This document shows, one piece after another, positions 1 to 19,243 of a DNA stretch of 20,239 nt. Numbering within the stretch: position 1 is the stretch's first letter; each line of letters starts with the position of its first letter. Below the pieces are notes generated by a model. That model had not been told where the DNA came from, made no database searches, and saw only the letters and a program-made list of their open reading frames with translations. The DNA comes from Neoechinorhynchus agilis (Eukaryota; Animalia; Acanthocephala). The translations under genes and the position numbers were made by a program. The stretch covers positions 1 to 20,239 of the forward strand of contig JBMGUZ010000050.1 in the NCBI GenBank assembly GCA_051530055.1. Direction: 5' to 3'.

Positions 1-517
1 GAATTGAACGTTTTTGGCAACGACTACGATACTCACGATGGCACGGGTTAGTGGCACTAATCAAATACTGATCTGAGAATTCTGTAAAGGCGTTCGGGAT
101 TATATCCACGTTGTCGATCTCGCTGAGGGTCATGTCACTTCAATGAAGAAGTTTAGCGAACCCGGTGTTCATATATATAATCTCGGGACCGGAAAAGGAT
201 ACTCCGTGCTTGATATGGTCAAGGCTTTGGAAAAGGTTTCAGGTAGAAATGTACGCAAATTCATAAAGAAATTATTTCACTTTTAAAGAGCCATATTTAG
301 GTCAGATATTGCATTAAACCACGCAGAGATGGAGATATCGCATCGGTATATTGTGATCCATCCAAGGCGGAACGCGAATTGGGATGGACCGCTAAATATG
401 GACTAAGCGATATGTGTATGTAAAAATTCACTAGAAATTTCCAAATGTAATTGACAATTTATAGGCTCAGATTTATGGCGATGGCAAAGTCAGAATCCAA
501 AAGGATATGAGCATTAA
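1..517 (+). CDS. GALE: UDP-glucose 4-epimerase, C-terminal part (gene starts before the window); exons <1-46, 90-250, 301-415, 465-517
   Basis: Spliced translation [30 protein letters not shown]...[80 protein letters not shown]. Three GT-AG introns (47-89, 251-300, 416-464) restore the frame. Confidence 0.96.
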
Positions 518-532
518 GAGACTATGGAGATT

Positions 533-810
533 TTATACGATCATTAAAAAATATCCTTTCTGATCGATTAATGCAAACTTTTTTTTATTGATTTCAATAT
601 CAATTGAAGGGGTTTCACGTTTTATCTTCTTAAAATTTACGTTTTCGCCTTTTCCTCGAGAATATTGAGCGATTGAAGAACCTTGAAATTGATAATTGAT
701 AAATTTCATATTTTTTGATCAATTCATGTAAATTTTTTTATGAATCTCAGTCTCAATTGAAGCGTTTTCACGTTTTATCTCCTTATGATCAAAAGATTAA
801 CGTTTTAAAG
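533..810 (-). repeat. Diverged tandem direct repeat with about 153 bp offset (about 545-645 vs about 700-810); each copy contains an AG followed by a short open frame
   Basis: On the minus strand, TAAG|GAGATAAAACGTGAAAACGCTTCAATTGA (781 downward) vs TAAG|AAGATAAAACGTGAAACCCCTTCAATTGA (628 downward), translating EIKRENASIE vs KIKRETPSID. Confidence 0.7.
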
Positions 811-1067
811 CAAAGCGAGAGTACTTCAATATAATTAGCAGGACTCACAGTGAGCAAAATGGTCTTTTTTGAAGTCAGCCGGCTCAGATGAGCGTGAGTG
901 GTCGTCTTCTCTCGTCGTCGTCGACCGTCATCCACTGCGGATCCGTCATCCACACCGGATACGTCATCCACTCCTGATCCGTCATCAACTCCGGATCCAT
1001 CATCCACTCCTGATCTGTCATCAACTCTGAAGTGACTACGAGGACCCAAAGGTACATGGGTCCTCTT
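719..1067 (-). CDS. Candidate spliced gene of unknown function with (VDDGSG)n repeat; exon 1067-849, intron 848-782, last exon 781-719; 5' end not found
   Basis: Open frame through the repeat, AT-rich acceptor-like TTGTTTAAG at 1076-1068, consensus GTGAGT donor at 848 and an in-phase TAAG acceptor at 782. No homology recognised, and the 67-nt intron is longer than the others. Confidence 0.35.
925..1032. repeat. 18-bp tandem repeat, 6 units, consensus CCGTCATCCACTCCGGAT
   Basis: Units start at 925, 943, 961, 979, 997 and 1015. They read PSSTPD on plus or VDDGSG on minus. Confidence 0.95.
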
Positions 1068-1500
1068 CTTAAACAAAATAAATAAAATAATTTAGATTTA
1101 AACCTTTCTTGATATTGTAGATATGTTCGTGAAATCAGCGTTGGACTCTTAAGACATAATTAGTGACGTTCCGCTTGTTGGCTAGTTCATTGCGAAAAAT
1201 AGTAAATTTCATTTTTATTTCTGTTTCCTACGGTATCTCATCAATAAGTGTTTATATAAATAAATATTTATAACGTAGATTTATGCTCTGGCTAGAAATA
1301 CAATCTATTTAGTTTTGCTCTCTTGTGTTTTATTTGTTGCTTTCCAATTCTTTATTTACCAAGACTAAAAATCCGCCAAATAGAATCAAATTTTAATTCC
1401 AAATGCCTAAAAACCTATAAGTGTGGTACATTTATGATTCGTTCAATAATGCAATGCTCATGTTACTTGTTTATGGCGTAAAAATTAAATGAATTTATTA

Positions 1501-1589
1501 AATCCGATATTTTGGCATAATATCGTGCCTTTATCAGGGTTGTATAAATGTTTTATTCGCACGAGATTGTACCTCTAAAATATCGGATT
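1501..1589. repeat. Small imperfect fold-back (MITE-like)
   Basis: AATCCGATATTTT (1501-1513) and AAAATATCGGATT (1577-1589) are a perfect inverted pair. Inner arms GGCATAATATCGTGC and GCACGAGATTGTACC pair with 3 mismatches. Confidence 0.75.
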
Positions 1590-1701
1590 AAGCTCGAATA
1601 GTTCAATTTTCAAACGCAATGTTTATTTTGTTTAAATGACCCGATACGTTTAAATCGCAGTGAACTTTGGATTCATCAAAAAGATGTTTTGTCTTCTAAA
1701 A

Positions 1702-2274
1702 TTAAGTTCTATGACCCAAAGATTTCAATAAATTTTCCATGTGGTAAAGGATCATCAAAGGTAAAATAGATCCGATTAAGTAGTATATCACATAAATAAC
1801 TCCGATTCCAGAAAATACACTTGCCAATGAATCGTCCGTAAATGCATTCGCTGAACATATTTGTCCAAACTGCTTAAAATACGACGCAAACTCAACTCCA
1901 TAGGTGATAATAGTTGCAAGATGAAGTCCAAACAGTATAATGATCAGTACAACGATAATCTTAGGATACAGTTTGTACCGAGTTATCAAAGCAACAAGTC
2001 CGAAAACCACGTAAAGGAAATTGAATATCGCAACGAGTATATTCGTTATAGTTGCGATTTGTAGAAATGAGGTCATTGAATTGACAGTGAGATGAGTTAC
2101 GGCGAAATTAGTGGAATTTATAGTCGTTAGTAAAACAGCGAATTGTCCTCTTGCGATGAAGCAAATTAGTCCATTTATTATTCCTGTGATACAACAACCA
2201 CAGCAATAAAACATTACTGCATATATTGTCCCTTCATTTTTTTTGTATTGTGCGAGAATACCATTGTTCTGCAT
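1702..2274 (-). CDS. Intronless 190-aa four-transmembrane protein (tetraspanin/LAPTM-like topology, family uncertain)
   Basis: ATG-to-TAA ORF with four long hydrophobic segments and a juxtamembrane CCGCC cluster. No diagnostic tetraspanin CCG motif in a large extracellular loop. Confidence 0.75.
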   Translation of the reverse strand: MQNNGILAQYKKNEGTIYAVMFYCCGCCITGIINGLICFIARGQFAVLLTTINSTNFAVTHLTVNSMTSFLQIATITNILVAIFNFLYVVFGLVALITRYKLYPKIIVVLIIILFGLHLATIITYGVEFASYFKQFGQICSANAFTDDSLASVFSGIGVIYVIYYLIGSILPLMILYHMENLLKSLGHRT

Positions 2275-2436
2275 TTTTATTTCTCAAATGGGCTAAAGAC
2301 GTTCTCACTTGTATATAATTTTCGTCCTAAATAAAACTTGAGTATTCAACATACCTTGATGATGACGAGGTTTTAGTGAAAAATACAAATAAACCTCAGT
2401 TCTTAAAATATGAGCTTTGCATATATTCTTATCCTT

Positions 2437-2651
2437 AATTTTAATTTAATTTGACAAATACGACCTAGAGTTTATTTATTTTTTGCCCAGCTTTCGCCGT
2501 TTTACGGCTTCAATTGGACAATTGTTAAAGTGTTTTATTTTTGACATTTAAACGCGAATAAAACACTTTAACAATTGTCCAATTGAAGCCGTAAAACGGC
2601 GAAAGCTGGGCAGATAAATAAACTCTAGGCCGTATTTTTCAAATTAAAATT
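2437..2651. repeat. Long inverted repeat / fold-back element with a perfect 56-bp stem
   Basis: 2484-2539 is the exact reverse complement of 2557-2612, with a 17-bp spacer. A further 16-bp match (2464-2479 / 2614-2629) and degenerate pairing extend to about 2437 / 2651. Confidence 0.95.
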
Positions 2652-2784
2652 GAGACATGGGCCTGGAAAATCAAGTAGCGATTCACGCTATTATAATATA
2701 TTTTTATCCATTAAATGGAAATGGTTATTAACTGTGCATCGTAAAAACAGAAAAGTAATCAAATCAAAATGTCGATATGTGAGG

Positions 2785-2952
2785 ATTTAGAAGTATTCAT
2801 TCTGTAAATGATTATTTATTAGAGACGTTTCGAACCTCATCGGGTTCATCATCAATTCTAAAAAAACGAGAGGTGAAATGACTGATGATGAACTCCGACG
2901 AAGTTCAAAACATATTTAATAAAGAATATTTACCGGGTAAAGACTTCTAAAT
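2785..2952. mobile_element. Inverted pair of Penelope-like pseudo-LTR fragments with degenerate hammerhead ribozyme cores
   Basis: Minus: TTGATGA-T-GAACC-CGATGA-GGTTC-GAAACGTC-TCT-AATAAA. Plus: CTGATGA-T-GAACT-CCGACGA-AGTTC-AAAACATA-TTT-AATAAA. Arms 2785-2856 and 2881-2952 are degenerate reverse complements. Confidence 0.6.
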
Positions 2953-3170
2953 AACACTTCTAGTGAAAAAATTGATTAGCGGAAATAATTGGAAGAAGGA
3001 AAATCCATGATTGAAGGTTTAGTTACTATTTCTCCTATAAAATATATAAAGTAATACTTTACGGTGATGTAACTCTTAATTTAAATGCGCAGCAAATGCG
3101 GAGAAACCGGCGAAAGAGAACTAAAATGTCATTCTACAAACATGGTCAAAGATTTTGATCTCAATGTTAG

Positions 3171-3341
3171 CGTCAAAGGAAAGGCACGAAATCCTGTGAA
3201 ACAATGGAAATTGGCGGAACGAATATGAGGAAATCAGACGATGGATATAGCGACGGATCAGATTCACCTCCCAGCCCTATACCTTCAAGAAGGCTCAGGA
3301 CGATCTCAGCATCGGATAGGTTTTGCCGAAGTAAGAAATGA
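3171..3341 (+). CDS. Possible orphan exon (RQRKGTK...SDDGYSDGSDSPPSPIPSRRLRTISASDRFCRSKK*) abutting the duplication junction
   Basis: 57-codon open frame after a TTAG, with higher GC than its flanks. No recognised homology. Confidence 0.2.
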   Translation, partial: RQRKGTKSCETMEIGGTNMRKSDDGYSDGSDSPPSPIPSRRLRTISASDRFCRSKK

Positions 3342-3616
3342 TCAATTTCTATTAAGTATAATTCAATTATTTAAATTTAAGTGCTTTAAAAGCGAATCCT
3401 GTAGTTAATCCATTCGCCAAGGTGAAGAAATCATCAGAAGAGTTTTCTGAGACGCATGTTCCTCCACTGAAATATTTCTCAGATGAAGAAGCCTTTCAAC
3501 TTAATCAATTAGACAACCACTCTGGCTCAATAAAAACGGATTCCCTTCATTCGGAGAGGTCTATGGATACGCCACGATCAGACATAGGCGATCCACTTCT
3601 ATATGATCGAATGTAG
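3331..3616 (+). pseudogene. Duplicated last intron (3331-3381) and last exon (3382-3616) of the claudin-like gene at 11300-12219
   Basis: Near-identical to 11934-12219; the ORF-track entries 3422..3616 and 12025..12219 differ at one residue. Upstream exons are absent. Confidence 0.85.
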
Positions 3617-3824
3617 CTTTGGGGAAAGTGTTCAGCCTTTCATTAGCTCCAAATTAACCAAATTTAATATTATTTACTTAATAAATCGGTTAACCTTTAT
3701 GACAGGTGAGCTCAGTCGTGATTTTAAGAAAATGTCGAAATTCGATGGTTTTGCCGAAATTCCAAATTACGTCACAATGTGTTCAAATCGCCTACAATCG
3801 ACGCTGCTGACGCAGATAATTTGA

Positions 3825-6746
3825 ACACCACTCATCGATCATGTTCAACCTGAGAAGACCAACGCTGCCGGGCTCCCACGCGTCTCTACTGGTTTGTGTC
3901 CGGTTTGCGGTAGGTCTTTTAAATTAACCAATCTGGGGGTTTTGTTTGTCCATGGTCCCCGGGATCTCCGCTGTAGTGGCTCTGGTTCTCCACCACAATT
4001 AACCGAACCTTTCGTGAGTGAGACCCCTCAGATCACCACTGATTCTATTTCGATACCTGATATCGTGCGGTTTCTGCCCAGGAACGTCCTGAAACGGATC
4101 CTTAAAGGCGCGCGATATCTGGTCGCCAAAGCGTTTACGGGATTGGTCAACGATTGCCTTCAAACGAACTGTGGGCCATCATGGACACGGCTCTTCGCTT
4201 TCCCGCGCTTAGTCCTCTGCACCAGCGGTGATTCTGGGGTGTCTTTGACATCAACAATCAAGGAAAGGTTAGCCTCCTTTGAACAAATATTTAACGATTT
4301 TGAAAGGAATCTCCGCGAGGTTCGTAAGGGACGCACGAAGGAAGAGTTTCGCTGCCGTTTTTCAAAGCGATCACTGACTGAACGTGTCTCTTCGAAGCTT
4401 GCGGACGGAGATGTTCGGGGGGCTGTTCGGTTATTGTCATCCTCCGACAGTTTCGCAAAAGGAGACAGCGAGACGCTACAAATACTCCGGTCGAAGCACC
4501 CATGTAGTAGCGGAAGTTTTGAAATTCCATCTCCTCCCATACAAGACAGGACGCCCACTCAAATTTCAGAGTTACAAAAGGCCATCTCATCTTTTGCAAA
4601 TGGTTCGGGTCACGGGCTTGACGGACTAAGGCCTCAGCACCTAAAGGACATGATGTCCTTTTCAACTGGTGAAGCAGCTCTCTCTAGAAAGTGCGCTTTC
4701 TCGAATAGTCGACCGCCTGACTGGAGAGGACCTGAACCCCGTTGCAAAGGACCTATTTTTCGGAGCCTCATTGTGTGCGCTCACAAAAAAAGAAGGTGGG
4801 ATCCGTCCCATCGCCGTATCTTCGACGATACGCCGACTCGCAGGAAAAATTCTCTGCAAACGTATTACAGAGAAAACCGGACAGCAACTTCGTCCAGTCC
4901 AACTGGGCTGCTGCACATCCTGCGGGGCGGAAGCTATTGTCCACTCGCTCCGAAACTTTGCTACGAGAAGCTCAGAGCCGTGCGTGATTCTTAAGTGTGA
5001 TTTTCGGAACGCCTTTAACTCTCTCAATAGAGAAACCATGTTCTGCGCAATTAGGGATCACGCACCAGAAGCCTTCCAGTATTTTCTCAATGCCTACGGG
5101 ACGGCGACTCCTTTGCTTTTCGAAGACCACCTCATTTGGTCCGAAAGAGGAGTGCAGCAAGGAGATCCCCTCGGTCCAATCGCATTCTCCCTAACAGTAA
5201 ATCCAATAGCGCATTCTCTCCATTCCAGCTTCAACGCTTGGTACTTGGATGACGCTACGCTCGGAGGTGATCCCTCCGTTGTACTGCGCGATTTGGAGAC
5301 GCTGATTAGGGAGACCTCGAAGATGGGCATTGAGCTCAATGCTGGAAAATGTGAGCTCCTTGTATTGAATATTGGAGACGCCGCCAAAGTCAAAGAACTA
5401 ATGGCTGGGTTCGAGGCCGTAGCTCCAGGCCTGAAACTCGTGACTCGGGAACAACTCAGCCTCCTGGGCAGTTGCGTCTTCGATTCAAATGTGGAAGATG
5501 AGATCGGCCATATCATACCGAAACTTTCGTTGCTGTGCGATAGGGTGTGCGCTCTCTCGGCTCATGAAGCCTTGTTTCTCATAAAGAACGCGCTCTTCAT
5601 CCCCAAATTATTGTACAAGGTTCGCACAGCAACATTTTTCAAACATAAGGAAGGATTGGCTAAGCTCGACGGCAAGGTGAGGGCTTGTCTCGAGCGTATT
5701 TTAAATGTCCAGCTCTCAGATGAGGCGTGGCGACAAGCTTCTTTGCCTGTGTCATCTGGGGGATTGGGGATTCGGGCACTAGTGAACCTTGCTTTGCCGG
5801 CCTTTCTTGGATCGTTTGAGGAAAGCCCATCAGTATCGAAGAAAATTTTGAAGGAAAAGTTCTGTCTTGGCCGGGATTTCGTGGTGGCGGTTGAGGAATG
5901 GTGCCAGCAGACAGGCGCTGACCATGTTCCAGTGAATGGCCTCAGACAGTCGATCTGGGACGGACCTCTTGTCGCGAAAGCTCATAGCTCTCTACTTTCC
6001 GGTTCTCGCGATGGGGTCGTCAGAGCCAGATTGTTGGTAGTTTCGACACGAGAATCTGGGGCGTGGTTGGAGGCTGTTCCTCTGGCATCAGTGGGAACTC
6101 TTCTTACTGATTTGATAACGAGGATCGCTGTCGATGTGGGTCTTTGGTTGATGCTTTCGGGCGACACGGTCTCGTCTAGTGAAGGTCAGGAGGAAGGTTC
6201 TCACGCCATTCTGAAATCAATAACGCAATTTCTCGGGCGTTGAGAACGGCGAACTTCCCGAACATCCTGGAACCCGCCCACCTTTGTCTACTAGACGGCC
6301 GTAGGCCCGATGAAATTTCGGTCTTCCCGTGGCGGGAGGGCAAATGCCTTCTCTGGGACGCCACGTGTGTGGACACCCTCACAGCCAGCAACATCCGCTA
6401 CTCCCTTGAAATCGCTGGTGGTGCCGCCAGTGCAGCGGAAGGGAGGAAAATACGGAAATATATTCAGTTATCGAGGGCTCACTATTTTGTCCCCTTTGGG
6501 GTAGAGACGTATGGAGCGCTCGGCAGCTCGGCACTCTCTCTCCTCCAGTATGTCTCGAAGAAATTGATAGAGGCAACCGGAGACTCAAGAGCAGGCGTAT
6601 TCTTTCGACAAAATATCTCGCTGGCAGTACAACGAGGCAATGCTGCCAGCGTGATGGCGACGTTCGAGGAAGGACAAAAGCTGGAATTTGGCGGGAGGTG
6701 GTGAGTGTGCTTCAAACAGATTGTTTGAATTGTTAAAAATATATTA
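3825..6746 (+). mobile_element. CRE-clade non-LTR retrotransposon, subfamily A, near full length and inactivated: N-terminal Zn finger, RT, Zn knuckle, RLE endonuclease
   Basis: Motifs CPVCG...H...C, LFFGASLCALTKKEGGIRPIAV, GVQQGDPLGP, WYLDD, LPVSSGGLG, RPDEI...LLWDATCVDT, FVPFGVETYG and ISLAVQRGNAASV. Frameshift at about 4683 and a 43-bp deletion at about 6126. The 5' boundary is approximate. Confidence 0.92.
6711..6729 (+). other. 3' UTR stem-loop of CRE-A (also at 17670-17688)
   Basis: TTCAAACA-GAT-TGTTTGAA, an 8-bp stem 6 nt after the ORF stop, identical in both 3' ends. Confidence 0.55.
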
Positions 6747-6859
6747 TGTTTTCTGAAGAATTCGATTTCAACGTGCATCAACTTCTATTTTAATATTCGA
6801 TTATCCATTTCCATGCTCCAAATAAAGGTGGATAGAGCATACCACGCATGCAACCCTGA

Positions 6860-7400
6860 TTTCCCCCGCCTTCAATTCTCTTTTGCTAATCACATTCTCA
6901 ATTCGCGCAAGGCCTTTCTTGCACATAAACTCGCCTAATATTCCATTCACCTCTGGTGGGAAAACACGAAAATCTTTCGTCAATCTCTCAAATTCGGACC
7001 TCTTTGCTATACTAAATTCTATCAATGCGCAACTTGGTGACTCCGCTAATTTCCTATTCCCAATTGGGCTCTTCGTTTTATCATCCCAGATGTAATTGAT
7101 CCACTAACCCACATAACCAACCAAAGTTTCAAGACCGGAATCTTCCCAAATTGCCTTTAAACTTCTCGGGTTTCACTGCTCCCGAAAGGTGGTAAACTTA
7201 TATTCATCTCAAGTTTTCGACCCATTTCTATCTTACCTTTCTTCTCTATGGTCTTTGAGAAATGCTTTAAAGCACACCTTCTGCCAATCTTCAATCGAAA
7301 AATTTCATCCATTCAATTAGGTTTCCGGCTTTTCGTGTACGGACGCCCCTCTTTGCATCTACGATTCTCTTTTTTTATAAATTCGGATTCGAGGTTTCAG
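6860..7400 (+). mobile_element. Decayed CR1/L2-like LINE fragment (pre-RT and RT N-terminal region)
   Basis: Across frameshifts: PLTHITNQSFKTGIFPNCL*TSRVSLLPKGG...FRPISILPFFSMVFEKCF...QLGFR, the APE-type LINE RT entry motifs. Confidence 0.8.
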
Positions 7401-7557
7401 AAATTTAGATAGAATACTTGGCGTACAAGTCAAAATGTCTGCTGTTCGCTTTCGAGATAGTGAAAATGTAAATTGGGATAAATCTTTGTTTAAATAAGTT
7501 TTAATCTTTTACATAGAAACGTTCGAATCGCATAAGATCCCTGTTTTAGATCTTCGA

Positions 7558-7902
7558 ATGTCGTCGCCGGTCCAATACATTGTTCTAAGGAAAGATTTAA
7601 AATGGCTTGCAGGGGCCCTCATTGCTCAAGCTTGCCACGCTGCTACCGCTGTAATCTTTCAGAACTACGAGGATCACTTAACTCTTTCTTATTTGAAAGA
7701 TTTTGATAATATGCACAAAATTGTTCTCGAGTGCGACGGCGAAAAGAAGTTGAATAACATTCAGCTGTAATTTTCTGAAAGGAACATAAAGTATAAACTC
7801 TGGATTGAAAACCCTGAAAATCGTGGAACCTGTATAGCACTGAAACCTTATCCTAAAAAAGGCGTTAACGATTTGTTTAAGAGGCTTAAACTTTTCAATT
7901 AA
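7558..7902 (+). CDS. PTRHD1: Peptidyl-tRNA hydrolase domain protein 1 with one in-frame TAA at 7768-7770
   Basis: VQYIVLRKDL.W.AGALIAQACHAATA...MHKIVLE...*...KLWIENPEN..TCIALKPYPK...KRLKLFN*. The region spanning the internal stop aligns without gaps to the human PTRHD1 sequence as I recall it. Confidence 0.9.
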
Positions 7903-8349
7903 GCATAAACATTAGATTTTTTCGAGAACGGGCAGAGCTGTATTGGAATTTAAGTGGAGCAGGAAAATATAAAGGACATAAAAAATCCCGAATCGTACAA
8001 GACTTAAGGATTAATCCCAAATACTTGGCTTCTACCGAGATCGTTGATAAATTGATTTTGCCTCTCTTCCGCTCTGAGAAGTGAAACAAAACACTAGTCC
8101 TTAAACGGTAAAGTTGCCTGATATCTTCGAATTATTGGCAGACCTTTAATGGTTGAGTTTTTGGTGATTTTACAAAGATTCCCTTTCGTATTTGAATTAA
8201 GTGGTTACTCAGATAAATTTCTAACAACGTCAATCTTTTCTGTCACCTATTTTTAATCCTTTGTGCTAAGTAATCCAACTGTCCCTTGCCTAAGACTAAT
8301 GGACGACTGAGCATTTTTAGCCTATTGTCGTTTTTATGATTAACATTAG

Positions 8350-10832
8350 CTGAGAAGTGCATCTTGTTTATTAGTTAACCTTTAAGAACATTAACTGAAA
8401 CTTTCTAGAAAAGCTTAAAAGTCTTCAACATTTTTTGCGAGGACTATCGCTCCAATTGGAAGACATCGATCGCTTAACCTTGTGATGGATTTTCATTTGC
8501 GCTACGCGAGAACGTCTCAAAGTTGCATCCCTCATCCTTCCACAAAATAAACTATATTTTTTGTTTCATGTCACTTGATGATATTTCTTTATTTAGCCGA
8601 AAACTCAGTATCATACACATACCACGGCGTCCCGGTGGTTCCACGGTCGTTCCGCAATGGCAGCGATGGGATGTTCACATCGGTACCCGAAGTCTCAGGG
8701 ACACTGCAATCTTTACTGTCTCCTCGGATGGAAGGGTACCCACAGAAACGATTAGGATAGCGTTGAGCTAAGCACGCGATTCTCTTGTAGAGACTGTCGC
8801 TAATCGAGTTCGGTTCACCAGGTCACGAAATTCTGACATTGAAGAGTTATGAATTCTCGTTACCAGGGGTGAGTTCCAAACTGATTGTTTGCAACCATTG
8901 ACGGGTACCTGCTCCCTGTATAAATCTCTACACCAAAGATAAAGCGCATCCACGGAATATTCATCCAAAGTGTAATTCTCGCCAAAAACGGATTTAACTA
9001 CTTTGCGGCTTGCTTCATACGATCCCAAATAAGCTAGCAGAGAAATATCGGGTGCTCTTCGGATACCCAAGCTGCCGGACGACACAGGCAAGGAGGCTTG
9101 ACGCCTGGCCCCGCCCGACAGCTCAGTATTTAAAATTTTCTCGAGAGAGGCCTTCATCGTCGTGTCTAATTTTGCCAGCTTGTCCCTATGTTTAAAAAAA
9201 GATGCAGTGCGCAGCTTATACCGCAGTTTTTTTGAATGAAGAGGGTGTTTTTTATGAGGAACAGAGTCTCATGTGAAGATAATTCATCAACTCGTTCGAA
9301 CAGTACCGAAAGTTTCGGTTGAAGATTGACAATCATTGTTTCAACATTAGAACCAAAATACAGCCGCCTAGAAGACTCAACAGGTCTAGAGTGATCAATT
9401 CTATCATGCGGGCCAGGTTCTGAAAACCTTTATGGATAGTTTGCCTGCACGCCTCATCTTCCATATTCATCACTAAAATATCACATTTCGCAGCATTCAA
9501 TTTAATGAAAATTTTTAGCCGTCTCCTTCACGAATGTCTCCCAATTGCGCAGTACAACAGAGGGGTTACCTCCGAGCGTGGCATTGTCCAGGTAGCAGCC
9601 GTTAAAACTGGATTGGAGAGAGTGCGTGACTGGATTGACTGCGAGTGAGAAGGTCAATGGGCCCAGAGGATCCCGATGTTGAACTCATCTTTTTGACCAC
9701 AAAACGTGGTTATTGAACAACAAGGGAGTTGGCGTCCCATAAGCATTAACGAAATAGGGAAATGCTTCTGGTGCGTGATCTCTGACTATTTCGAGCAAAT
9801 CTACTCGGTGAACTGTATTGAAAGCGTTTAAAAAAATTACATTTCAAGATCACAAACGGCTTTGAGTTTTCGGTGCTGAACGTGTGGAGTAAATGAACTA
9901 TCGCTCCTGGTCCACAAGGTGAACAGCAGCTCAACTCAGTCGAACGAAGTCTCGTTCCTACTTTTTCCGCGATCCTTTTATTTACAATTTTTGCTGTTGA
10001 GCGGCGCAGAGTTGTTAGAATTGCAATGGTGCGAATCAAACAATCCCTTTTCGTGAGTGCACATAGCGATGTTCCCAAAAATAGTCCAATTGCTTTCAGA
10101 ATCAATTCTCCCATTGCAAATTGGTACGTGCCAATGCATCTTAAAGGGACTGAGCAGCGCTACCTACTGAAAAAGAAGTCACATGCTTGAGATGTTGGTG
10201 GTGGAGTCCGTCTAGCTCGTGAGTTGATCCGTTATCAAATCAGGAGATTACCGTCTTCAATTCTGATTTCGATGATAAAATATAAGGGATCTTAACAATA
10301 GAGGAGGATTCCACGAATTACAGCTGATCGCCGTCACTGGGAGGCTTGGAACGAAGAATTCGTAAAGTTTCTTCGTTATCTTTGGTTAGACTGTCCATTG
10401 ATGATAAAAGGCGATCTGCTCTTCGGACATCTCCCCGTCTACTAACTTCGAAGAAACGCGCTCAGCAAGCCGCGGATTTTACTTTCATTGATGGTCAGCC
10501 TTCTGGACACACTCCGTACGTAGTTCGCATGCTGCCGAAAGGCATTAAGATTTTAATCAAAAGAAATTATTCGCTACCCGTGAATGCCTTCAAACGCTAA
10601 TTTATTGAATTTAATCGTTGAAACGATTCCAAGCTGAAACATCGAGCATTACTCGGTACATCTTTTCTAGGTGTGAATAATGAATAAAACCTGTCGTGTG
10701 TTTGTCCGAGCATTCAATTAATTCCCAGTAACTCAAAATTTACTGATGATTGGAAACAAGACGAAAGGAAAGAAATCTGATAATTTCCTTGTGATAGCCG
10801 AGGACCGGAATTTTCGAGATGGTTATCCCTTT
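8350..10832 (-). mobile_element. CRE-clade element, subfamily B, heavily decayed; catalytic YLDD reads YLDN
   Basis: Pieces collinear with CRE-A: EIIRFL, LAERVSSKL, GTSLCALTKRD, RDPLGP...CYLDNATLGG, RRQASLPVSSGSLG and HRCHCG. The 3' limit (about 8350) rests on weak RLE similarity and is approximate. Confidence 0.88.
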
Positions 10833-11299
10833 TGTGCAATTTTTCGACTTTTGTGACGCTTCTCGCGACGAAAATCCGACATTTTCAACGAATTAATAGT
10901 TTTTGTGTTATAATTGTTTAGTTGTTTTGGCTTTTTGCATTACCTTCTTAAATTTATATAAAATTCATAGCTCGATTGTCGAAAACTGCGATTGTACCCA
11001 AAATTGTGTATCTCTTTAATTGAATCGCTTGATAATTCATTTTTTTAGGCAAAATGGACTTTAGTGGCTTGGTGCAATGCTCGTGCGCGGTTTAAACGGT
11101 TTTTGATAAAGTTGATCTCGACCCGTCATGAGTTTTTTGATAAACAAAAATATACAATAAATGTTTGTTGTTTGCCTTCAAAACTCCAAACAATAAGAAA
11201 AACATATTTGTACGGAAAATGTTTGTAGTGTTAAACGAATGTGATTTAAGAATATCCTGCACCCATCCTAAACTCCGACAGATTGATCGATAACGCCTA

Positions 11300-12219
11300 A
11301 TGAATCCTACAAAGTTCAAAGCATTGAGTATCGCAACTGCGATTTTGTTCTTTGCAAGTTCAATCTTAAGTTGGGCCTCACTGTGCAGCAATCATCCATG
11401 GTCACGAGTTCCGGATGCGAAAATCACCATCAGAATCTCCGGACATTCATCCATGTCTCCGATTTATTTCCTTCTCATTGAAGGTGAGTTTCCTTCTTGT
11501 TTCTTTTATAAAATCGCTTTCGTTAGGAGGACTAATGCGCACATTGCTGCTTATGAGCGCAGGAATCGAAACTGCGGCTTTTCTCATGGCCGTGTCTCAT
11601 TTTCTATGCCAAGGACGAGTTCGCATATTGTGGCTGCAACTTTCCTCTGTTTTTGGACAAATCTCTTGTAAGTGTCGCCTACTATTGTAAATATTCTTGA
11701 TATTCGTCTTTAGTGACCTGTCAACAAGTGGGAATCGGGTTGTTTGCTTTCTACATCAAAGAGAAGGGTCATCGATTTTGCTACCCATTTTATTTGGCGA
11801 TTGCAAGCTGCCTTTTCTCGATCTTAGCCTTTGTAGTCTCCCAAACAGTGACGTATATTCTCGGCACGAATATTCTCAGATTGTTTGACGATGGATTTAC
11901 TGAGATACGGCCAAAGTATCTGCAGCGCAGCGGGTAAGAAATGATCAATTTCTATTAAGTATAATTCAATTATTTAAATTTAAGTGCTTTAAAAGCGAAT
12001 CCTGTAGTTAATCCATTCGCCAAGGTGGAGAAATCATCAGAAGAGTTTTCTGAGACGCATGTTCCTCCACTGAAATATTTCTCAGATGAAGAAGCCTTTC
12101 AACTTAATCAATTAGACAACCACTCTGGCTCAATAAAAACGGATTCCCTTCATTCGGAGAGGTCTATGGATACGCCACGATCAGACATAGGCGATCCACT
12201 TCTATATGATCGAATGTAG
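11300..12219 (+). CDS. Four-exon, 259-aa four-TM protein, claudin/PMP22-superfamily-like; exons 11300-11483, 11527-11667, 11714-11933, 11985-12219
   Basis: Three GT-AG introns of 43, 46 and 51 nt join four ORF-track fragments into one 780-nt frame. TM1 is followed by S..W, there is a C(Y)PFYLA motif before TM4, and the tail is long and polar. The canonical W-GLW-C-C signature is absent. Without intron 3 the protein would end QRSG* at 11937. Confidence 0.8.
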
Positions 12220-12428
12220 CTTCGGGGAAAGTGTTCAGCCTTTCATTAGCTCCAAATTAACCAAAATTAATTATTATTTACTTAATAAATCGGTTAACCT
12301 TTATGACAGGTGAGCTCAGTCGTGATTTTAAGAAAATGTCGAAATTCGATGGTTTTGCCGAAATTCCAAATTACGTCACAATGTGTTCAAATCGCCTACA
12401 ATCGACGCTGCGGACGCAGATAATTTGA

Positions 12429-13363
12429 ACACCACTCATCGATCACGTTCAACCTGAGAAGACCAACGCTGCCGGGCTCCCACGCGTCTCTACTGGTTTG
12501 TGTCCGGTTTGCGGTAGGTCTTTTAAATTAACCAATCTGGGGGTTTTGTTTGTCCATGGTCCCCGGGATCTCCACTGTTGTGTCTCTGGTTCTCCACCAC
12601 AATTAACCGAACCTTTCGTGAGTGAGACCCCTCAGATCACCACTGATTCTATTTCGATACCTGATATCGTGCGGTTTCTGCCCAGGAACGTCCTGAAACG
12701 GATCCTTAAAGGCGCGCGATATCTGGTCGCCAAAGCGTTTACGGGATTGGTCAACGATTGCCTTCAAACGAACTGTGGGCCATCATGGACACGGCTCTTC
12801 GCTTTCCCGTGCTTAGTCCTCTGCACCAGCGGTGATTCTGGGGTGTCTTTGACATCAACAATCAAGGAAAGGTTAGCCTCCTTTGAACAAATATTTAACG
12901 ATTTTGAAAGGAATCTCCACGAGGTTCGTAAGGGACGCACGAAGGAAGAGTTTCGCTACCGTTTTTCAAAGCGATCACTGACTGAACGTGTCTCCTGGAA
13001 GCTTGCGGACGGAGATGTTCGGGGGGAGGGCTGTTCGGTTATTGTCATCCTCCGACAGTTTCGCAAAAGGAGACAGCGATACGCTACAAATACTCCGGTC
13101 GAAGCACCCATGTAGTAGCGGAAATTTTGAAATTTCATCTCCTCCCATACAAGACAAGACGCCCACTCAAATTTCAGAGATAAAAAAGGACATCTCAACT
13201 TTTGCAAATTGTTCGGGTCACGGGCTTGACGGACTAAGGCCTCAGCACCTAAATTACATGATGTCCTTTACAGCTGGTGAAGCAGCTCTCTCTAGGAAGT
13301 GCGCTTTCTCGAATAGTCGACCGCCTGACTGGAGAGGACCTGAACCCCGTTGCAAAGGACCTA
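12429..13363 (+). mobile_element. CRE-A 5' fragment (Zn finger to start of RT), duplicate of 3825-4755
   Basis: Near-identical to copy 1. It shares the upstream TGA and the CT-run frameshift and has an extra +1 G at about 13025. Confidence 0.92.
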
Positions 13364-14090
13364 CTTATTCATAAATGATCTTCCCAAAATTATATCGGTG
13401 CATACATTTTTAAGCGCATACAGTTCGGCATTTTCATAGATAATCCCTTTGTATTTAATGTTGGAACGGGTTATTCCGGTCGTGCTCCGTTCTATATCGC
13501 CAGAAGCTAATCTTACCGGCATTTGTCTGTATATCATTTTGAGGTTTAGTTGCTTTATGAGCTGATCATCGATGAAGCTCTGAGAACTTCCAGTATCGAA
13601 CAGAACAGAAAAATTGTCTTTGTTATTTATTGTGATTGTTTGCGAAGTTCGACGATAATCATTTTCAATTGCTAGTAACGAGATAAGCGGCTATCTTTGA
13701 CATGGACCTGCATACTCCTGAGTAATGGCCAATCTTCTGGCATTTGTTACATTTGGAATCTTTTGCAGGGCATATTGATCTGGCATGGCGTCTATTCCCA
13801 CAGAAAAAACACGCTTGTTTGTTTTAATTGGCTGCTAGACATTCAGGAACTTTGGTTCGATGGTTGTTAAGTGATTCCGTAATTTCGTTTTGAATACGGT
13901 TGCAATGGTTGGTTTCATTTTTTTCGATGTAATTGTATTGATTGGTATTGAAATAGCGGCAATCGGCTTCAGCTTGTTCTATAATATATGCCTGCTGAAT
14001 CGTTTCCTCTAAGGATATAATCGCTATTTCGGGCAGCTTTTGTCTCATTTTGTCGGAGCATAGCCCAGCAATTAATGACTCCCTTATTGC
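13364..14090 (-). mobile_element. Ty3/gypsy LTR retrotransposon gag-protease relic
   Basis: IRESLIAGLCSDKMRQKL (gag), double knuckle CFFCGNRRHARSICPAKDSKCNKCQKIGHYSGVC (about 13811-13709), protease LFDTGSS (about 13600) and DIILGRSFM. Confidence 0.9.
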
Positions 14091-14094
14091 TTAT

Positions 14095-14800
14095 GTCCTT
14101 AAAGATGTTCATCAGAGCATTTCGGTATTGTTCGGATGATGTACTACACAAATATGAACCGAATTGGATCTACAACAAACTAAAAGTGTGTACCCGAGGA
14201 GGTCATTAAGAAATGTATGAGGGAGGCTCGATATGTTCCTCTGGTGAGAACATTCAATCAGGAGGAAAAGAAGCAATTTATCGGGACACCATTCATCAAT
14301 GATAGTTGGAATGCAAAAATAGACACCCTGATCAAACGAATCGATGGGGACAAAGTGTTCACTATGTATAGTAGGAAGGGCAGAACTCTCCAAGGAATTC
14401 TCGGACCGAAGAATGAGGATGTTCCTGCTGGATGTGTCTATAGATTCCATATTCGAATTGCAGTCTGTCATATGTGGGACAAACGAACAATCTATAAACT
14501 GAAGGACTGATGAGCGCAGAAGAGCAGCTATCAAAAAGTTGGATGTGAACTCGGCGATAGCTTCCCACATCAATGGTAGTGGGCATGAAATCAGTTTTGA
14601 TGGCGTCGAGGTTCTGGCGAGGAGTGTCGTAAGACGCGACAGAGTGACTATGGAAGCCATCATTATCACGCAAACGGATACTTTTGTTGGTAACAAAGCT
14701 GACTACAAACTCAGTCTGCGAGTCGCACCGGATAAACTATTTGACCATGCTTCTTTTAAATTGTAGATTGACTCAAGAAAGCCAACCAAAAGGCCGAAAA
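14095..14800 (+). mobile_element. Penelope-like element 3' relic: RT thumb, GIY-YIG endonuclease and a degenerate hammerhead-like terminus
   Basis: MFIRAFRYCSD, GCVYRF...YVGQT (frameshifted), SAIASHINGSGHEISFDGVEVLAR, then CTCAAGA-AAGCC-AACCAAAA-GGCC-GAAA at 14772-14800, just after the TAG. Confidence 0.85.
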
Positions 14801-14849
14801 TTTTCAAGATAAATCTATTTTTTGAATCAAACATCGCTGATTGAAACTG

Positions 14850-15392
14850 AAGTTAATCAACAATCGCCTCGGCGTCAGAAGGTGCGCAGCAGCCTATCTC
14901 AGTCGGACGAAGCTTCGTGCCCACAATTATCGCAATGCTTCTGTTTAAAATTTTTGCTGCTAAGCGGCGCAGAGTTGTTCCAATTGCGATGAGACGAACC
15001 CCACCATCCTTTTTCGCTAGGACACACAAAGATGCGCCGAAAAATAGCTCGATTGCTTTCAGAATCAATTCTCCCCCAGTAAATTGGCCGACTAAGCGTA
15101 CCAATGCATCTTTGATGGACTGAGCAGCTCCACATACTGATTAAGAAGTCATATCTTTGAAATGTTGGTGCCGGAACCCGTCTAGCTCGTAAGTTGATCC
15201 GTTAGCAAATGAGGAGATTACCATCTTCAATTCTGATTTCGATGATAAAATATAATGGATCTTAACAATGGAATAGGATTCTACGAAATACTGCCGATAG
15301 AACTCACTGGGATGTTTGCAACGAAGAATTCGAAAAATTTCTTCGTCATCTTTGGTTAGACTGTTCATTGATGATAAAGTTGATCTGCTCAG
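14850..15392 (-). mobile_element. Additional, less decayed CRE-B paralog fragment (pre-RT to RT start)
   Basis: IFRILRCKHP...SFANGSTYELDGFRHQHFKDM...FFGASLCVLAKKDGGVRLIAIGTTLRRLAAK...AEAIVD. It clearly differs from the 9900-10390 copy. Confidence 0.88.
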
Positions 15393-16690
15393 TGTCTCCC
15401 AATTGCGCAGTACAACAGAGGGGTTACCTCCGAGCGTGGCATTGTCCAGGTAGCAGCCGTTAAAACTGGATTGGAGAGAGTGCGTGACTGGATTGACTGC
15501 GAGTGAGAAGGTCAATGGGCCCAGAGGATCCCGATGTTGAACTCATCTTTTTGACCACAAAACGTGGTTATTGAACAACAAGGGAGTTGGCGTCCCATAA
15601 GCATTAACGAAATAGGGAAATGCTTCTGGTGCGTGATCTCTAACTATTTCGAGCAAATCTACTCGGTGAACTGTATTGAAAGCGTTTAAAAAAATTACAT
15701 TTCAAGATCACAAACGGCTTTGAGTTTTCGGTGCTGAACGTGTGGAGTAAATGAACTATCGCTCCTGGTCCACAAGGTGAACAGCAGCTCAACTCAGTCG
15801 AACGAAGTCTCGTTCCTACTTTTTCCGCGATCCTTTTATTTACAATTTTTGCTGTTGAGCGGCGCAGAGTTGTTAGAATTGCAATGGTGCGAATCAAACA
15901 ATCCCTTTTCGTGAGTGCACATAGCGATGTTCCCAAAAATAGTCCAATTGCTTTCAGAATCAATTCTCCCCTTGCAAATTGGTACGTGCCAATGCATCTT
16001 AAAGGGACTGAGCAGCGCCACCTACTGAAAAAGAAGTCATATCCTTGAGATGTTGGGAGTGGAGTCCGTCAAGCTCGTGAGCTGATCCGTTATCAAATGA
16101 GGAGATTACCGTCTTCAATTCTGATTTCGATGATAAAATATAAGGGATCTTAACAATAGAGGAGGATTCCACGAATTACAGCTGATCGCCGTCACTGGGA
16201 GGCTTGGAACGAAGAATTCGAAAAATTTCTTCGTTATCTTTGGTTAGACTCTTCATCGATGATAAAAGGCGATCTGCTCTTCGGACATCTCCCCGTTTAC
16301 TAACTTCGAAGAAACGCGCTCAGCAAGCCGCGGATTTTACTTTCATTGATGGTCAGCCTTCTGGACACACTCCGTACGTAGTTCGCATGCTGCCGAAAGG
16401 CATTAAGATTTTAATCAAAAGAAATTATTCGCTAACCGTAAATGCCTTCAAACGCTAATTTATTGAATTTAATCGTTAAAACGATCCCAAGCTGAAACAT
16501 CGAGCATTACTCCGTACATCTTTTCTAGGTGTGAATAATGAATAAAACCTGTTGTGTGTTTGTCAGTGCATTCAATTAATTCCCAGTAACTCAAAATTTA
16601 CCGATGATTGGAAACAAGTCGAAAGGAAAGAAATCTGATAATTTCCTTGTGATATCCGAGGACCGGAATTTTCGAGATTGTTATCCCTTT
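15393..16690 (-). mobile_element. 1298-bp direct duplicate of the CRE-B segment 9535-10832
   Basis: Same length, near-identical sequence and shared lesions; ORF-track entries 9746..10114 / 15640..15963 and 10346..10600 / 16204..16458 match. Confidence 0.93.
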
Positions 16691-17705
16691 GAGGCGTGGC
16701 GACAAGCTTCTTTGCCTGTGTCATCTGGGGATTGGGGATTCGGGCACTAGTGGACCTTGCTTTGCCGGCCTTTCTTGGGTCGTTTGAGGGGAGCCTACCA
16801 GTATTGAAGAAAATTTTGAAGGAAAAGTTCTGTCTTGACCGGGATTTCGTGGTGGCGGTTGAGGAATGGTGCCAGCAGACAGGCGCTAACCATGTTCTCG
16901 TGAATGGCCTCAGACAGTCGATCTGGGACGGACCTATCGTCGCGAGAGCTCACAGCTCTCTTCTTTCAGGTTCTCGCGATGGGGTCGTCCGAGCTAGACT
17001 GTTGGCAGTTTCAACACGAGAATCTGGGGCGTGGTTGGAGGCTGTTCCTCTGGCATCTGTGGGAACTCTTCTTACTGACGAGGTAACGAGGATCGCAGTA
17101 TCCTTAAGACTTGGTCTCCCGATATGCACGCCCCATCGCTGTCGATGTGGGTCTTTGGTTGATGCTTTCGGGCGACACGGTCTCGTCTGCAGAAGGTCAG
17201 CAGGAAGGTTTTCACGCCATTCTGAAATCAATAACGCAATTTCTCGGGCGTTGAGAACGGCGAACTTCCCGAACATCCTGGAACCCGCCCACCTTTGTCG
17301 ACTAGACGGCCGTAGGCCCGATGAAATTTCGGTCTTCCCGTGGCGGGAGGGCAAATGCCTTCTCTGGGACGCCACGTGTGTGGACACCCTCGCAGCCAGC
17401 AACATCCCCTACTCCCTCGAAATCGCTGGTGGAGCAAGGACTCACTATTTTGTCCCCTTTGGGGTAGAGACGTATGGAGCGCTCGGCAGCTCGGCACTCT
17501 CCTCCAGTATGTCTCGAAGAAATTGATAGAGGCAACCGGAGACTCAAGAGCAGGCGTATTCCTTCGACAAAATATCTCGCTGGCAGTACAACGAGGCAAT
17601 GCTGCCAGCGTGATGGCGACGTTCGAGGAAGGACAAAAGCTGGAATTTGGCGGGAGGTGGTGAGTGTGCTTCAAACAGATTGTTTGAATTGTTAAAAATA
17701 TATTA
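16690..17705 (+). mobile_element. CRE-A 3' fragment (post-RT, Zn knuckle, RLE), corresponding to 5721-6746
   Basis: Intact CTPHRCRCG...HGLVC knuckle. It has a 48-bp in-frame deletion of ASAAEGRKIRKYIQLS and a 4-bp deletion at about 17500, and shares the 3' end up to AAAAATATATTA. Confidence 0.93.
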
Positions 17706-18069
17706 CGTTCTTATCGAAAAAAATCTGTCTATTCTAATAAACTTTCTATGTACACTTTACATTGCATACTACACATTTTAAAATATCAGCGTGTTTATAA
17801 TAACGAATCTGAATTTTTAGGGAAGCTCACAAAGGTGGCACATTTCTTGGCCTTTTTAATTATTTTTTTCAAATTTATGGGTTGATAAAATTCGTTGAGG
17901 AAATATGGAAGTCAATTTCTAGTTTTATTATAATCACGATCAATGTTTTTCGTTGTATCAAAGAATTATTGAACCTTTTCCAATCGCAATTCTTTAATAG
18001 TTTTAAAAAGTTCATAATTTCTTTGCATAACCTTCAGAATCTTTAAGCAGAAATCATTTACACCACCGC

Positions 18070-18480
18070 TCTGGATCACTCACCTGCCTTCCTGGTGTAA
18101 CGGTCGAAAGGACGGATGCAGCGTTCCCGCGTGTTTTGTAGGAGGAATACTCCTGATCTCGAATCGTTAATGATTCGTCTCAATCTCTTGGACAATTGGT
18201 TGACCAGGTCCTGCATTGCGGTACCAAACGACCCGAATGCCTCGACACCAAAGGAACAAAATAATGATTTCGACAAAAGTCAATGTATTTTGTCCTTTGG
18301 CTTTTCTCAGCGACGGACTGTGGTAGACAAAAAATTTAGGTCACAGCACGGTTGACTTTAGTAAAATTGTTGTGATCAAGAGCGAATGAGCGCATTTTTG
18401 TCGTTTTCGGAAATGCAACATTCGGTAGTGCTTGCTAAGTGGTTCTCAGTGACCTGAAGATGCTGATTATCGGTGCGGCC
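18070..18480 (-). mobile_element. Old CRE 3' end relic (third subfamily)
   Basis: FCSFGVEAFGSFG...LSKRL...DSRSGVFL and RGNAASVL match the CRE RLE C-terminus. The 5' limit is approximate. Confidence 0.75.
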
Positions 18481-18998
18481 GCTGTAGGTCTCTCAATTTT
18501 AACCCCAAAAATGTGAAATTGCAGCCTTGAATGTTAGCGAGCTTCTTCATTTCGATCGTTCTGGGAATCCTATCGATAAATATGAACCTGCTTGCTCTTC
18601 TGCGCAATTGCACTCTTAAATGAAATGTCGAAAGCGATATTAATAAGGAGCCTGCAAAACTAGAGTTGATCTGCAAGCGGACAGTTTATCTCGAAATACA
18701 TGAACCTATATTCCTTATCGAGAACTGCTTGTAACACCTTAAATTACTACATAAATCGAGAGCTGCCTTCTTTTTCGAGCTTTCGGCGACCTTGGTAAAG
18801 CTGACACATTGATTTGGCAGGGAATATTTCCACTTTGAATACAGCATGGAGTCTTACTGGTTTACTTTTCAAAATATTACTGAGTATATTTTACATTCAA
18901 TTAAGTCAGAGTTGTACTTCAAGCATAATTAATAATGTTAATTTAGTAATCAATTGGCATGCAAACACATTAAATTAGACATTAAAATTTTCTGAATG

Positions 18999-19059
18999 CT
19001 GATTGGATGCAAAGATTAAGCGCGCCAAAAATTTGCGATTTTTCATGATTTCTAATTGG
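18999..19059. promoter_or_regulatory. E2F-like site flanked by two inverted CCAAT boxes
   Basis: CTGATTGG (18999-19006), GCGCGCCAAAA (19020-19030) and ATTGG (19055-19059) in AT-rich DNA. No target gene identified. Confidence 0.35.
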
Positions 19060-19243
19060 TTAAATAGAGCAGCAAAATACTATATATGAATTTATTTTCA
19101 AATTAGCGAACGATTGCTTCGAAGCAACTAAAGTATTTTTAAAAGTGCTTAGACATTCCAAATCATATTGATATGAAATTCTTATTCGATGGACACGATT
19201 ACGATGAAGAATAAAAAAACTGCAATAATTTATTTTTATTACG

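Follow-up and report, generated by a model that had tools for sequence, protein, structure and literature searches.

The window analysed here is a whole contig of Neoechinorhynchus agilis (JBMGUZ010000050.1, 20,239 nucleotides, forward strand). It holds part of a tandem array of a host gene together with several pieces of a retrotransposon, referred to below as the element. Array and element meet at two places, designated locus A and locus B. The features are listed in Table 1.

Table 1. Features of the window, with the comparisons on which they are based
Positions	Strand	Feature	Comparison
1..2964	.	Left flank, outside the host gene array	C2:282797-285760 minus strand, 100% over all 2964 bases
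2965..3185	+	Host-like DNA just upstream of the element 5' part	Contiguous with 2252-2964 at C2:288223-289154
3186..3330	+	First 145 bp of a near-full-length element, start codon at 3225	>20 canonical copies, 92-99%
3331..3381	+	Host intron 3 copy, 51 nt, GTAAGA...TTAAG	99% to 11934-11984; present in six element-free gene copies
3382..3616	+	Host exon 4 copy, stop codon 3614-3616	Equals 11985-12219
3617..3746	+	Host 3' tail, AATAAA at 3680, up to the insertion site	Runs on into the equivalent of 6751 onwards at six empty sites
3747..6750	+	Element copy A, 5'-truncated; reverse transcriptase and predicted endonuclease tail	
6751..12350	+	One full host tandem unit with the four-exon gene at 11300-12219	Order seen in other copies
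11934..12350	+	Native intron 3, exon 4 and 3' tail (locus B)	
12351..13363	+	Element copy B, junction and 5' truncation point same as in copy A, cut off at 13363	
16690..17709	+	Element 3' part at the right edge of the array block	Equivalent to 5721-6750 (self-BLAST)

Host gene array

The host gene is a tandemly repeated four-exon gene, putatively of the tetraspan kind. In the model for locus B the exons lie at 11300-11483, 11527-11667, 11714-11933 and 11985-12219 (259 codons) and are separated by predicted introns of 43, 46 and 51 nt with GTRAG donors; position 11934 is, by this model, the first base of predicted intron 3. The gene had been called claudin-like in a preliminary description of this DNA, a label that can be kept as a weak lead. 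The language-model neighbours of exon 3 belong to the Claudin_2, L_HMGIC_fpl and PMP22_Claudin clusters (0.78-0.87, to be read as a lead only), and a Pfam scan of exons 1, 3 and 4 singly gave no match at E 0.01 or better. The reading frame of exon 4 is open in seven of eight copies, with no third-position excess over its codon positions (12/11/9).

Exon 4 without the element was looked for among the gene copies, and six other copies in the genome were found to have intron 3 and exon 4 with no element there. The order 9885-12350 followed by 6751-8145 was likewise seen in six other copies, and at six empty sites the equivalents of 12350 and 6751 are adjacent, without the element. The segment 6751-8145 was considered as a 3' transduction ending at 8145 and was dropped, three C9 copies being contiguous across the 8145|8146 join; two C1 units diverge at 8145.

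On its left the array block (3331-16689) adjoins the 5' part of an element (3186-3330), and on its right the 3' part of an element (16690-17709). The latter is 87% identical, with gaps, to 5721-6750, rising to 99% over the last 213 bp (self-BLAST). It is followed by unique DNA: no other full copy of 17710-20239 was found in the genome. A place in the genome at which the left flank adjoins 6751, 8146 or 17710 was also looked for, and none was found.

The element family

The element is an R2-like non-LTR retrotransposon with a predicted restriction-like endonuclease, present here as a dead copy. A Pfam RVT_1 match on 4669-6240 (E 3.2e-19) identifies a non-LTR-type reverse transcriptase, and the solved structures closest to it are R2 proteins (E 2.6e-6). 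The translation of 6130-6480 shows a C-x-C..H..C motif and, behind it, RPD..WD..K, with no profile or structure match for this piece; no AP endonuclease match was obtained in the reading frames scanned with Pfam. The element resembles R2 and its kin in its reverse transcriptase, in a predicted C-terminal tail with CCHC and PD..D..K, in a zinc finger at the N terminus and in the frequency of 5' truncation, but its copies are dispersed rather than rDNA-restricted and it has two overlapping reading frames.

The name CRE, under which the element was first described, does not imply strict CRE membership. In the strict CRE clade (CRE1/2, SLACS and CZAR) the restriction-like endonuclease lies downstream of the reverse transcriptase and insertion takes place only in spliced-leader genes. 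The predicted endonuclease is placed alike in the present family, but the family numbers hundreds of copies, whose flanks are unrelated. Among more than 20 copies compared, neither the 5' nor the 3' flanks were related to one another, and site-specific insertion of the CRE type in spliced-leader RNA genes was not encountered.

A first look gave approximately 926 candidates for the 3' end and 181 for the 5' region, consistent with many 5'-truncated copies sharing one 3' end. The 5' ends vary and are mosaic among copies. Sharply bounded internal deletions, a back-duplication or an inversion were seen in 7 of the 22 family copies sampled, and are taken as the footprint of frequent template switching. 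The 428-bp extra piece was considered as an element intron that the canonical copies have lost by removal; this was rejected, none of 13 equivalent registers having GT...AG ends.

The shared block and the donor junction

Self-BLAST of the window aligned 3331-4758 with 11934-13366 at 97.7% identity (1433 columns, 5 gaps). The repeat had been given as 3331-4755 and 11934-13363 in the preliminary description, and the end of the match at 4755/13363 agrees. Its other observations were reproduced as well: identity begins at the G of GTAAG (3331 and 11934), the bases before the donor differ (GCCGAA versus CAGCGG, 0 of 6 in common), and the captured exon is in frame at locus B only, the upstream frame at locus A reaching the donor in another phase. 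The chance expectation for a repeat of such size is far exceeded. An exact fit to the donor would occur at about 3 in 8600 per random breakpoint, a figure to be read with the fact that the donor fit is also the reason why the finding was picked.

The first 416 bp of the block are host DNA (last intron, last exon and 3' tail) and the remainder is the 5'-truncated element, inserted 131 bp past the host stop codon. Only eight copies of the 416 bp occur in the genome. Loci A and B have 13 derived variants in common, are 99% identical over 3331-4190 and lie 8603 bp apart, which is one period of the 8.6 kb tandem unit. The host-element junction pattern is found genome-wide only at 3737-3763 and 12341-12367, both in this window. 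Because one insertion junction and 13 derived variants are common to two loci that are one array period apart, loci A and B are DNA duplicates: the element was inserted in 5'-truncated form after the stop codon of one gene copy, and the unit was then duplicated as DNA. Copy A is a mosaic relative to copy B and the family consensus, and is identical to the consensus over 4247-5746. That B came from A through a crossover where the 416 bp begin is unlikely, exon 3 of B being as diverged (6%) as the 416 bp of B; the lineage switch, which falls near 11670 and not at 11934, also disfavours it.

The array at locus A breaks off precisely where predicted intron 3 begins, and what adjoins this break is the initial 145 bp of a near-full-length element. 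This element 5' part closes with the 12-mer GGTTTTGCCGAA at 3319-3330, and copy A opens with the same 12-mer at 3747-3758, so that the two element parts are complementary halves with a 12-nt overlap. In canonical copies the equivalent of 3186-3330 runs directly into the equivalent of 3759 onwards; more than 30 such copies read straight through the 12-mer, which is present once, without the 416 bp. For unrelated breaks the overlap is roughly a 1-in-100 coincidence (about 24 in 3400), noticed after the finding had been selected. When the window was scanned with Rfam to see whether the 12-mer marks a ribozyme, nothing reached the gathering score at any position. The DNA of 2965-3185 is not found upstream of any other canonical element copy. 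The fusion of the array donor to the element 5' part is the new feature of locus A, and it is a single fossil.

The assembly of the region around locus A is poor. A candidate for a second independent chimera, C1:15170-18851, was not accepted as an independent copy: its left part is error-ridden, with 107 nt of only C and A followed by an element of another lineage, and its element body has 0 of the 13 A/B variants.

That the host's last intron and last exon lie inside an element copy, beginning at the donor G, stands from the preliminary description; two of the explanations offered for it do not. In the first, a read-through transcript was retrotransposed and locus A is the 5'-transduced daughter of B. 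The start of the host piece at the intron's first base and the variable, mosaic 5' ends of the family would suit such an event. However, locus A is the original insertion site, with the same host-element junction and a right flank that continues the host unit, and GTAAG is preceded by element sequence and not by a new target. In a LINE 5' transduction the host piece lies at the extreme 5' end and at a new locus, whereas here element sequence lies upstream of it. As written, this explanation is very improbable. In the second, the element truly begins at GTAAG, and the host adopted this sequence as a last exon. Nothing but the common start point speaks for it. Comparison of the element copies for their true 5' end showed that GTAAG is not that end and that there was no exaptation by the host, since the more than 30 canonical copies lack the 416 bp; the six element-free gene copies with the same intron and exon oppose it too, as does a family of about 180 (5' region) and 900 (3' end) candidates against eight copies of the 416 bp. 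We regard it as practically eliminated. The third explanation, duplication at the DNA level, holds for the relation of A to B but leaves out the missing 5' element part as the left partner with its 12-nt overlap.

The two perfect copies of the 12-mer around the insert could also be a 12-bp target-site duplication, made when a small retrocopy of the host piece (416 nt) entered an element copy in trans. The right end of the insert is, however, exactly the element insertion site, and the right flank of the element continues the host unit; a retrocopy in an unrelated element could not give both. We consider this, too, highly unlikely.

An assembly artefact on a small, repeat-rich, unplaced contig is improbable, if less remote than a trans retrocopy. 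In its favour, the window makes up an entire 20-kb contig whose first 2964 bases are a 100% duplicate of C2 sequence, C1:13670-15169 duplicates C2:279596-281096 at 100%, and the agreement of copy A with the family consensus over 4247-5746 is what over-polishing would yield. A repeat-mediated false join would, however, fall within the repeat; it would not surround 416 bp of low-copy DNA with a 12-nt duplication. A second contig has this junction too, with small errors, and the window ends in unique DNA.

Origin of the donor junction

Most of the pattern is thus an ordinary insertion and a DNA duplication in a tandem gene array, and one unusual junction remains. The donor junction at locus A may have been made by the reverse transcriptase of the element, and we tentatively favour a template jump by this enzyme over plain end joining. 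The template would have been a read-through RNA of host and element that had been cut at the 5' splice site. Synthesis, proceeding 3' to 5', would have crossed the resident element sequence and then the host tail, and would have stopped at the 5' end of this RNA, the intron GU. The enzyme would then have jumped to a full-length element RNA held close by its homology to the new strand. RNase H may have trimmed the element RNA to a stub of about 12 nt, the new 3' end serving as the landing point; this step is our own speculation, and such a stub would give the 12-nt overlap. The completed end would finally have been joined to unrelated DNA at 3185. The full sequence of events, in which the junction is the fossil of a reverse-transcribed spliceosomal intermediate (the intron-3' exon RNA) followed by a jump to RNase-H-trimmed element RNA, is doubtful as a whole.

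A template jump is favoured by the same-sense orientation of the parts, by the start of the host piece at a predicted RNA-processing site, by the canonical copies with a single 12-mer and no 416 bp, by the six empty sites, by the unique junction pair, by the derived variants and one-period spacing of A and B, by the complementary element halves and by the template-switching footprint in the family. Against it, there is one junction (n=1) and no second independently flanked copy was established; the lack of a third-position excess in exon 4 also counts against it. The right side is chromosomal array DNA in place, not a free-standing insertion, so that the model also needs a broken end or later recombination. 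The element parts on either side of the block 3331-16689 also fit the capture of a DNA fragment, and the donor fit carries little weight, having been the selection criterion.

Pure DNA breakage and joining is itself a reasonable possibility, to which we give slightly less credence. A 13.4-kb array fragment would have been captured in a broken element copy minus its middle 2 kb; one end of the fragment would be the intron 3 donor and the other the equivalent of 10832, and both the donor fit and the 12-nt overlap would be chance. The element parts flanking the block do agree in orientation and are rightly ordered, 5' part before 3' part, with unique DNA beyond. The gene inside it has kept its introns, which marks the block as DNA-derived, microhomology at both junctions is at most 1-2 nt, and the region is full of segmental duplicates. 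The selection of the finding for its donor coincidence also counts for end joining. On the other side, only 12 nt separate the left break in the outer element from the start of the inner copy, for which the odds with unrelated breaks are again about 24 in 3400. Neither a target-site duplication nor an empty site connects 3185 to 17710, and the segment from 17710 on is not matched at the only paralogue of the left flank, C2:288223-289154. Three homology-based DNA models, namely single-strand annealing, synthesis-dependent annealing and break-induced replication, were set aside by reasoning, as they would clip the 416-nt tail and give a canonical hybrid.

Insertions at DNA breaks offer one comparison for the proposed jump. 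L1 rearrangements and endonuclease-independent insertion at DNA breaks were reportedly described by Gilbert, Symer and Morrish and their colleagues in 2002. In such insertions the cDNA bridges unrelated DNA ends, and the fragments may lack a 3' end and a target duplication. We know of no such case with a link to a splice donor or an overlap with a neighbouring resident copy. As there, retroelement cDNA would here join unrelated ends; the donor link and the resident-copy overlap are the differences.

In LINE-1 5' transductions and mRNA/LINE-1 chimeras (PMC11838501) a host transcript is, as here, joined in the same orientation to a LINE; the joint has splice sites, and the read-through may be driven by host promoters (PMC11838501). 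There, the LINE follows directly on the 3' end of an upstream exon; the host piece is the 5'-most part of the chimera, which has flanks of its own at a new locus (PMC11838501). Here, by contrast, the piece begins with an unspliced intron and sits inside the element, between the two copies of a 12-nt duplication, at the original insertion site. In U6/L1 pseudogenes (PMC4476161) and a tripartite Magnaporthe pseudogene (PMC2104539) two or three RNAs were copied serially by a LINE reverse transcriptase, as is proposed here; double jumps are documented in LINE chimeras (PMC2104539). Each joint in these chimeras is at the 5' end of the template that was left (PMC4476161, PMC2104539), as it would be at locus A. 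They are, however, whole new insertions with target duplications, and the acceptor was copied from its own 3' end (PMC4476161, PMC2104539), whereas in the present case an element RNA trimmed internally would have served as acceptor, and the product continues into chromosomal DNA already in place. End-to-end template jumping is known for R2-type reverse transcriptases (PMC12203849; 10.1101/792986).

Two attractive readings are removed by this analysis, namely an element that starts with a splice donor and a host last exon borrowed from an element. If the junction arose by plain end joining, it adds one rearrangement scar to those of a repeat-rich region. If the reverse transcriptase made it, an animal genome would here preserve a rare natural footprint of a splicing intermediate used as template, and also of a template jump that was tethered by homology and carried out by an R2-like enzyme; this activity now serves genome engineering. 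It would then represent one route by which a host intron and exon enter a mobile element. Should the splicing-intermediate origin be true, discarded splicing intermediates would enter retrotransposition and leave unspliced introns inside mobile elements.

The element family and its 5' end

From 3747 onwards the sequence is that of an abundant element family: the first-look candidates numbered 181 for the 5' region and 926 for the 3' end. The element encodes a reverse transcriptase (RVT_1, E 3e-19) with R2 proteins as its nearest solved relatives, a zinc finger in its N-terminal part and a CCHC motif followed by RPD..D..K in its C-terminal part, and because of these features it is assigned from sequence to the non-LTR retrotransposons of the restriction-like-endonuclease kind. 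The flanks of its copies are unrelated from one to another, so that the family is not site-specific, unlike the classical CRE elements.

In more than 20 canonical copies the equivalent of window 3186-3330 runs straight into that of 3759 onwards, with the 12-mer GGTTTTGCCGAA present singly, and the long frame from the ATG equivalent to 3225 passes through this 12-mer into the zinc finger. The preliminary description had considered GTAAG as the true 5' end of the element, exapted by the host as a last exon; this continuity and the long frame show that the element does not start there and refute that reading. Since the canonical first reading frame runs to about the equivalent of 4690, overlapping the reverse-transcriptase frame, the frame change at that point is read as a feature of the family and not a mutation.

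Sharply bounded internal deletions, a back-duplication or an inverted part were seen in 7/22 near-full-length copies (in genome stretches L012, L018, L019 and L025-L028), the back-duplication (111 bp) in L012 and the inverted part in L025. A related second reverse-transcriptase element lies on the minus strand at 9007-9783 and 15389-15643 (67-76% nucleotide identity to the main family), within a duplicated 1.3-kb segment (9535-10832 and 15393-16690, 97.8%).

The host gene and its tandem array

The query 3331-4100, searched against the genome from which the window comes (102 contigs, 46.2 Mb in all; contig C50 is the window in its entirety), split at its position 416/417. Its first 416 bp (3331-3746), the tail of a host gene, were found in only eight copies. 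Six of these lie on other contigs (one on C9, one on C46, four within 2.95-3.23 Mb of C1); there the entire gene region 10433-12350 precedes the 416 bp and the equivalent of window 6751-8145 directly adjoins them on the 3' side. By their sequence these six are empty sites, at which the last intron, last exon and 3' tail of the gene are present with no element behind. Because the join 8145/8146 is contiguous in three C9 copies, 6751-12350 is read as one period of the tandem unit, the element lying where one period ends and the next begins.

Exons of the host gene in the window (one splice-site set, giving an open 259-codon frame)
Exon	Position	Strand
1	11300-11483	+
2	11527-11667	+
3	11714-11933	+
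4	11985-12219	+

The introns are 43, 46 and 51 nt long, with GTRAG donors. Among seven gene copies, changes by codon position showed a third-position excess in exon 1 (2/3/10) and exon 3 (11/7/21) and none in exon 4 (12/11/9). Exon 4 is open in 7/8 copies and the splice sites are preserved in all, so that intron 3 is likely to be spliced. A Pfam scan of exons 1, 3 and 4 singly gave zero matches; the language-model neighbours of exon 3 were claudin, LHFPL and PMP22 clusters (0.78-0.87), a kinship taken as a lead only. Variation within the gene is highest in exon 3, where 39 of 221 nt vary and many of the changes alter amino acids. The upstream half of gene copy B (10433-11669) shows 0 differences in 867 bases from the copy at C1:3.219 Mb (L036) and the gene from exon 3 onwards is 6-8% diverged from every copy, which points to a recent gene conversion whose boundary falls near 11670.

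Relationship of loci A and B

Self-comparison of the window bore out the coordinates and description given earlier for the repeat between locus A (from 3331) and locus B (from 11934): 3331-4758 aligned with 11934-13366 at 97.7% identity (1433 columns, 5 gaps; repeat families D4, D5 and D7). The G of GTAAG is the first identical base, the preceding GCCGAA (A) and CAGCGG (B) have nothing in common, and the last matching base is 4755/13363.

In the whole genome the host-element junction was found at two places only (3737-3763 and 12341-12367). The two loci are 8603 bases apart, equal to one unit plus one element, have 13 derived variants in common, a 2-nt deletion among them, and are 99% identical across 3331-4190. 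On this evidence A and B are judged to be DNA copies of one single insertion, and the DNA-level duplication proposed in the preliminary description holds for their relationship. The insertion shows no target duplication and one base was possibly lost; the host-side end TTCGAT resembles TCGGATA, the element sequence that immediately precedes the 12-mer. Such microhomology is frequent at 5'-truncated joints.

Right of about 4190 the identity of A and B is only 95.8%. Copy B differs from the family consensus by about 4%, evenly along its length. Over 4247-5746 copy A is the same as the consensus but for 1 difference in 1475; from 5747 on, where the consensus is shallow, it again departs by about 3%. 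Both of its ends are about 3% off, in contrast to this patch. The patch would be accounted for by gene conversion from a younger copy, or else by over-polishing of the element's most-repeated part. In other copies, the DNA cutting off copy B at 13363 (13364-15390) forms the usual upstream portion of the host unit, so that copy B ends either at the edge of a unit or where another element terminates; the copy at C1:2.95 Mb begins matching at exactly 13363.

The left junction of locus A

At locus A the 416 bp are flanked by two copies of the 12-mer (3319-3330 and 3747-3758), and the 428 extra bases disrupt the element frame. Left of 3331 lie the initial 145 bp of a near-full-length element, whose start (3186-3192) coincides with that of other copies; the DNA in front of this piece is contiguous at another place (2252-3163 at C2:288223-289154). 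The two element pieces are complementary halves with a 12-nt overlap and the host tail between them. The joint of 12-mer and GTAAG was found once in the genome, plus a noisy second rendering at C1:15170-15718 that was not counted as independent; the host piece in that rendering is interrupted by 107 nt of C and A only (C1:15719-15825, L034:5719-5825), which resemble noise from read ends incorporated into the assembly.

The first 2964 bases of the window match C2:282797-285760 (minus strand) at 100% identity, as C1:13670-15169 (L034:3670-5169) does C2:279596-281096. The three contigs disagree beyond these stretches, suggesting that near the start of chromosome 2 an inverted duplication is unresolved or the assembly is tangled. 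A near-perfect hairpin at 2479-2617, with a 17-nt loop and 61-nt arms that are 97% complementary, is a member of a dispersed family matched on both strands at many loci and looks like a miniature inverted-repeat element; 925-1087 matches long arrays of a satellite of about 54 bp at C3:6.31 Mb, C3:7.07 Mb and C2:6.71 Mb (80-90% identity).

A template jump by the reverse transcriptase is tentatively put forward for the joint, at somewhat short of an even chance. Synthesis would have run through resident element sequence and the host tail and stopped at the 5' end of a template cleaved at the 5' splice site, before transferring to full-length element RNA tethered by homology. RNase H trimming of the element RNA to a short stub, if it occurred, would have left a new 3' end about 12 nt inside the homology, and end-to-end jumping onto it would give the 12-nt overlap; both this trimming and the kind of template are inferred. 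End-to-end jumping is a known property of non-LTR enzymes (10.1101/792986; PMC2104539). The many sharp internal deletions, one back-duplication and one inversion within the family are listed under the same reading.

The other end of the array block, at 16689 (equivalent of 10832), meets an element 3' part (equivalent to 5721-6750) and then unique DNA. Because element 5' sequence lies to the left and 3' sequence to the right, the block, 13.4 kb in all, may lie entirely within a single broken element. Ordinary end joining that placed array DNA in a broken element would fit this bracketing and the introns retained inside the block, but would leave the 12-nt relation to chance (roughly 1 in 100); this second surviving reading is judged only slightly less likely than the template jump. 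An assembly artefact is very improbable and every other reading still less probable. The fit to the splice donor carries little weight, as it was the reason the finding was chosen.

Host exons fused to LINE-1 at splice donors (PMC11838501) and serial template jumps (PMC2104539, PMC4476161) are known. In those cases the exon end meets the LINE, whereas at locus A the intron start does, and those chimeras are free-standing new insertions. A literature search found no description of retrotransposition templated by a lariat or splicing intermediate, which is weak evidence of absence. The case at locus A is a single fossil in a poorly assembled region. The observation at A and B is real; most of the pattern is ordinary, an insertion followed by tandem duplication, and one junction, on the left side of locus A, is unusual.
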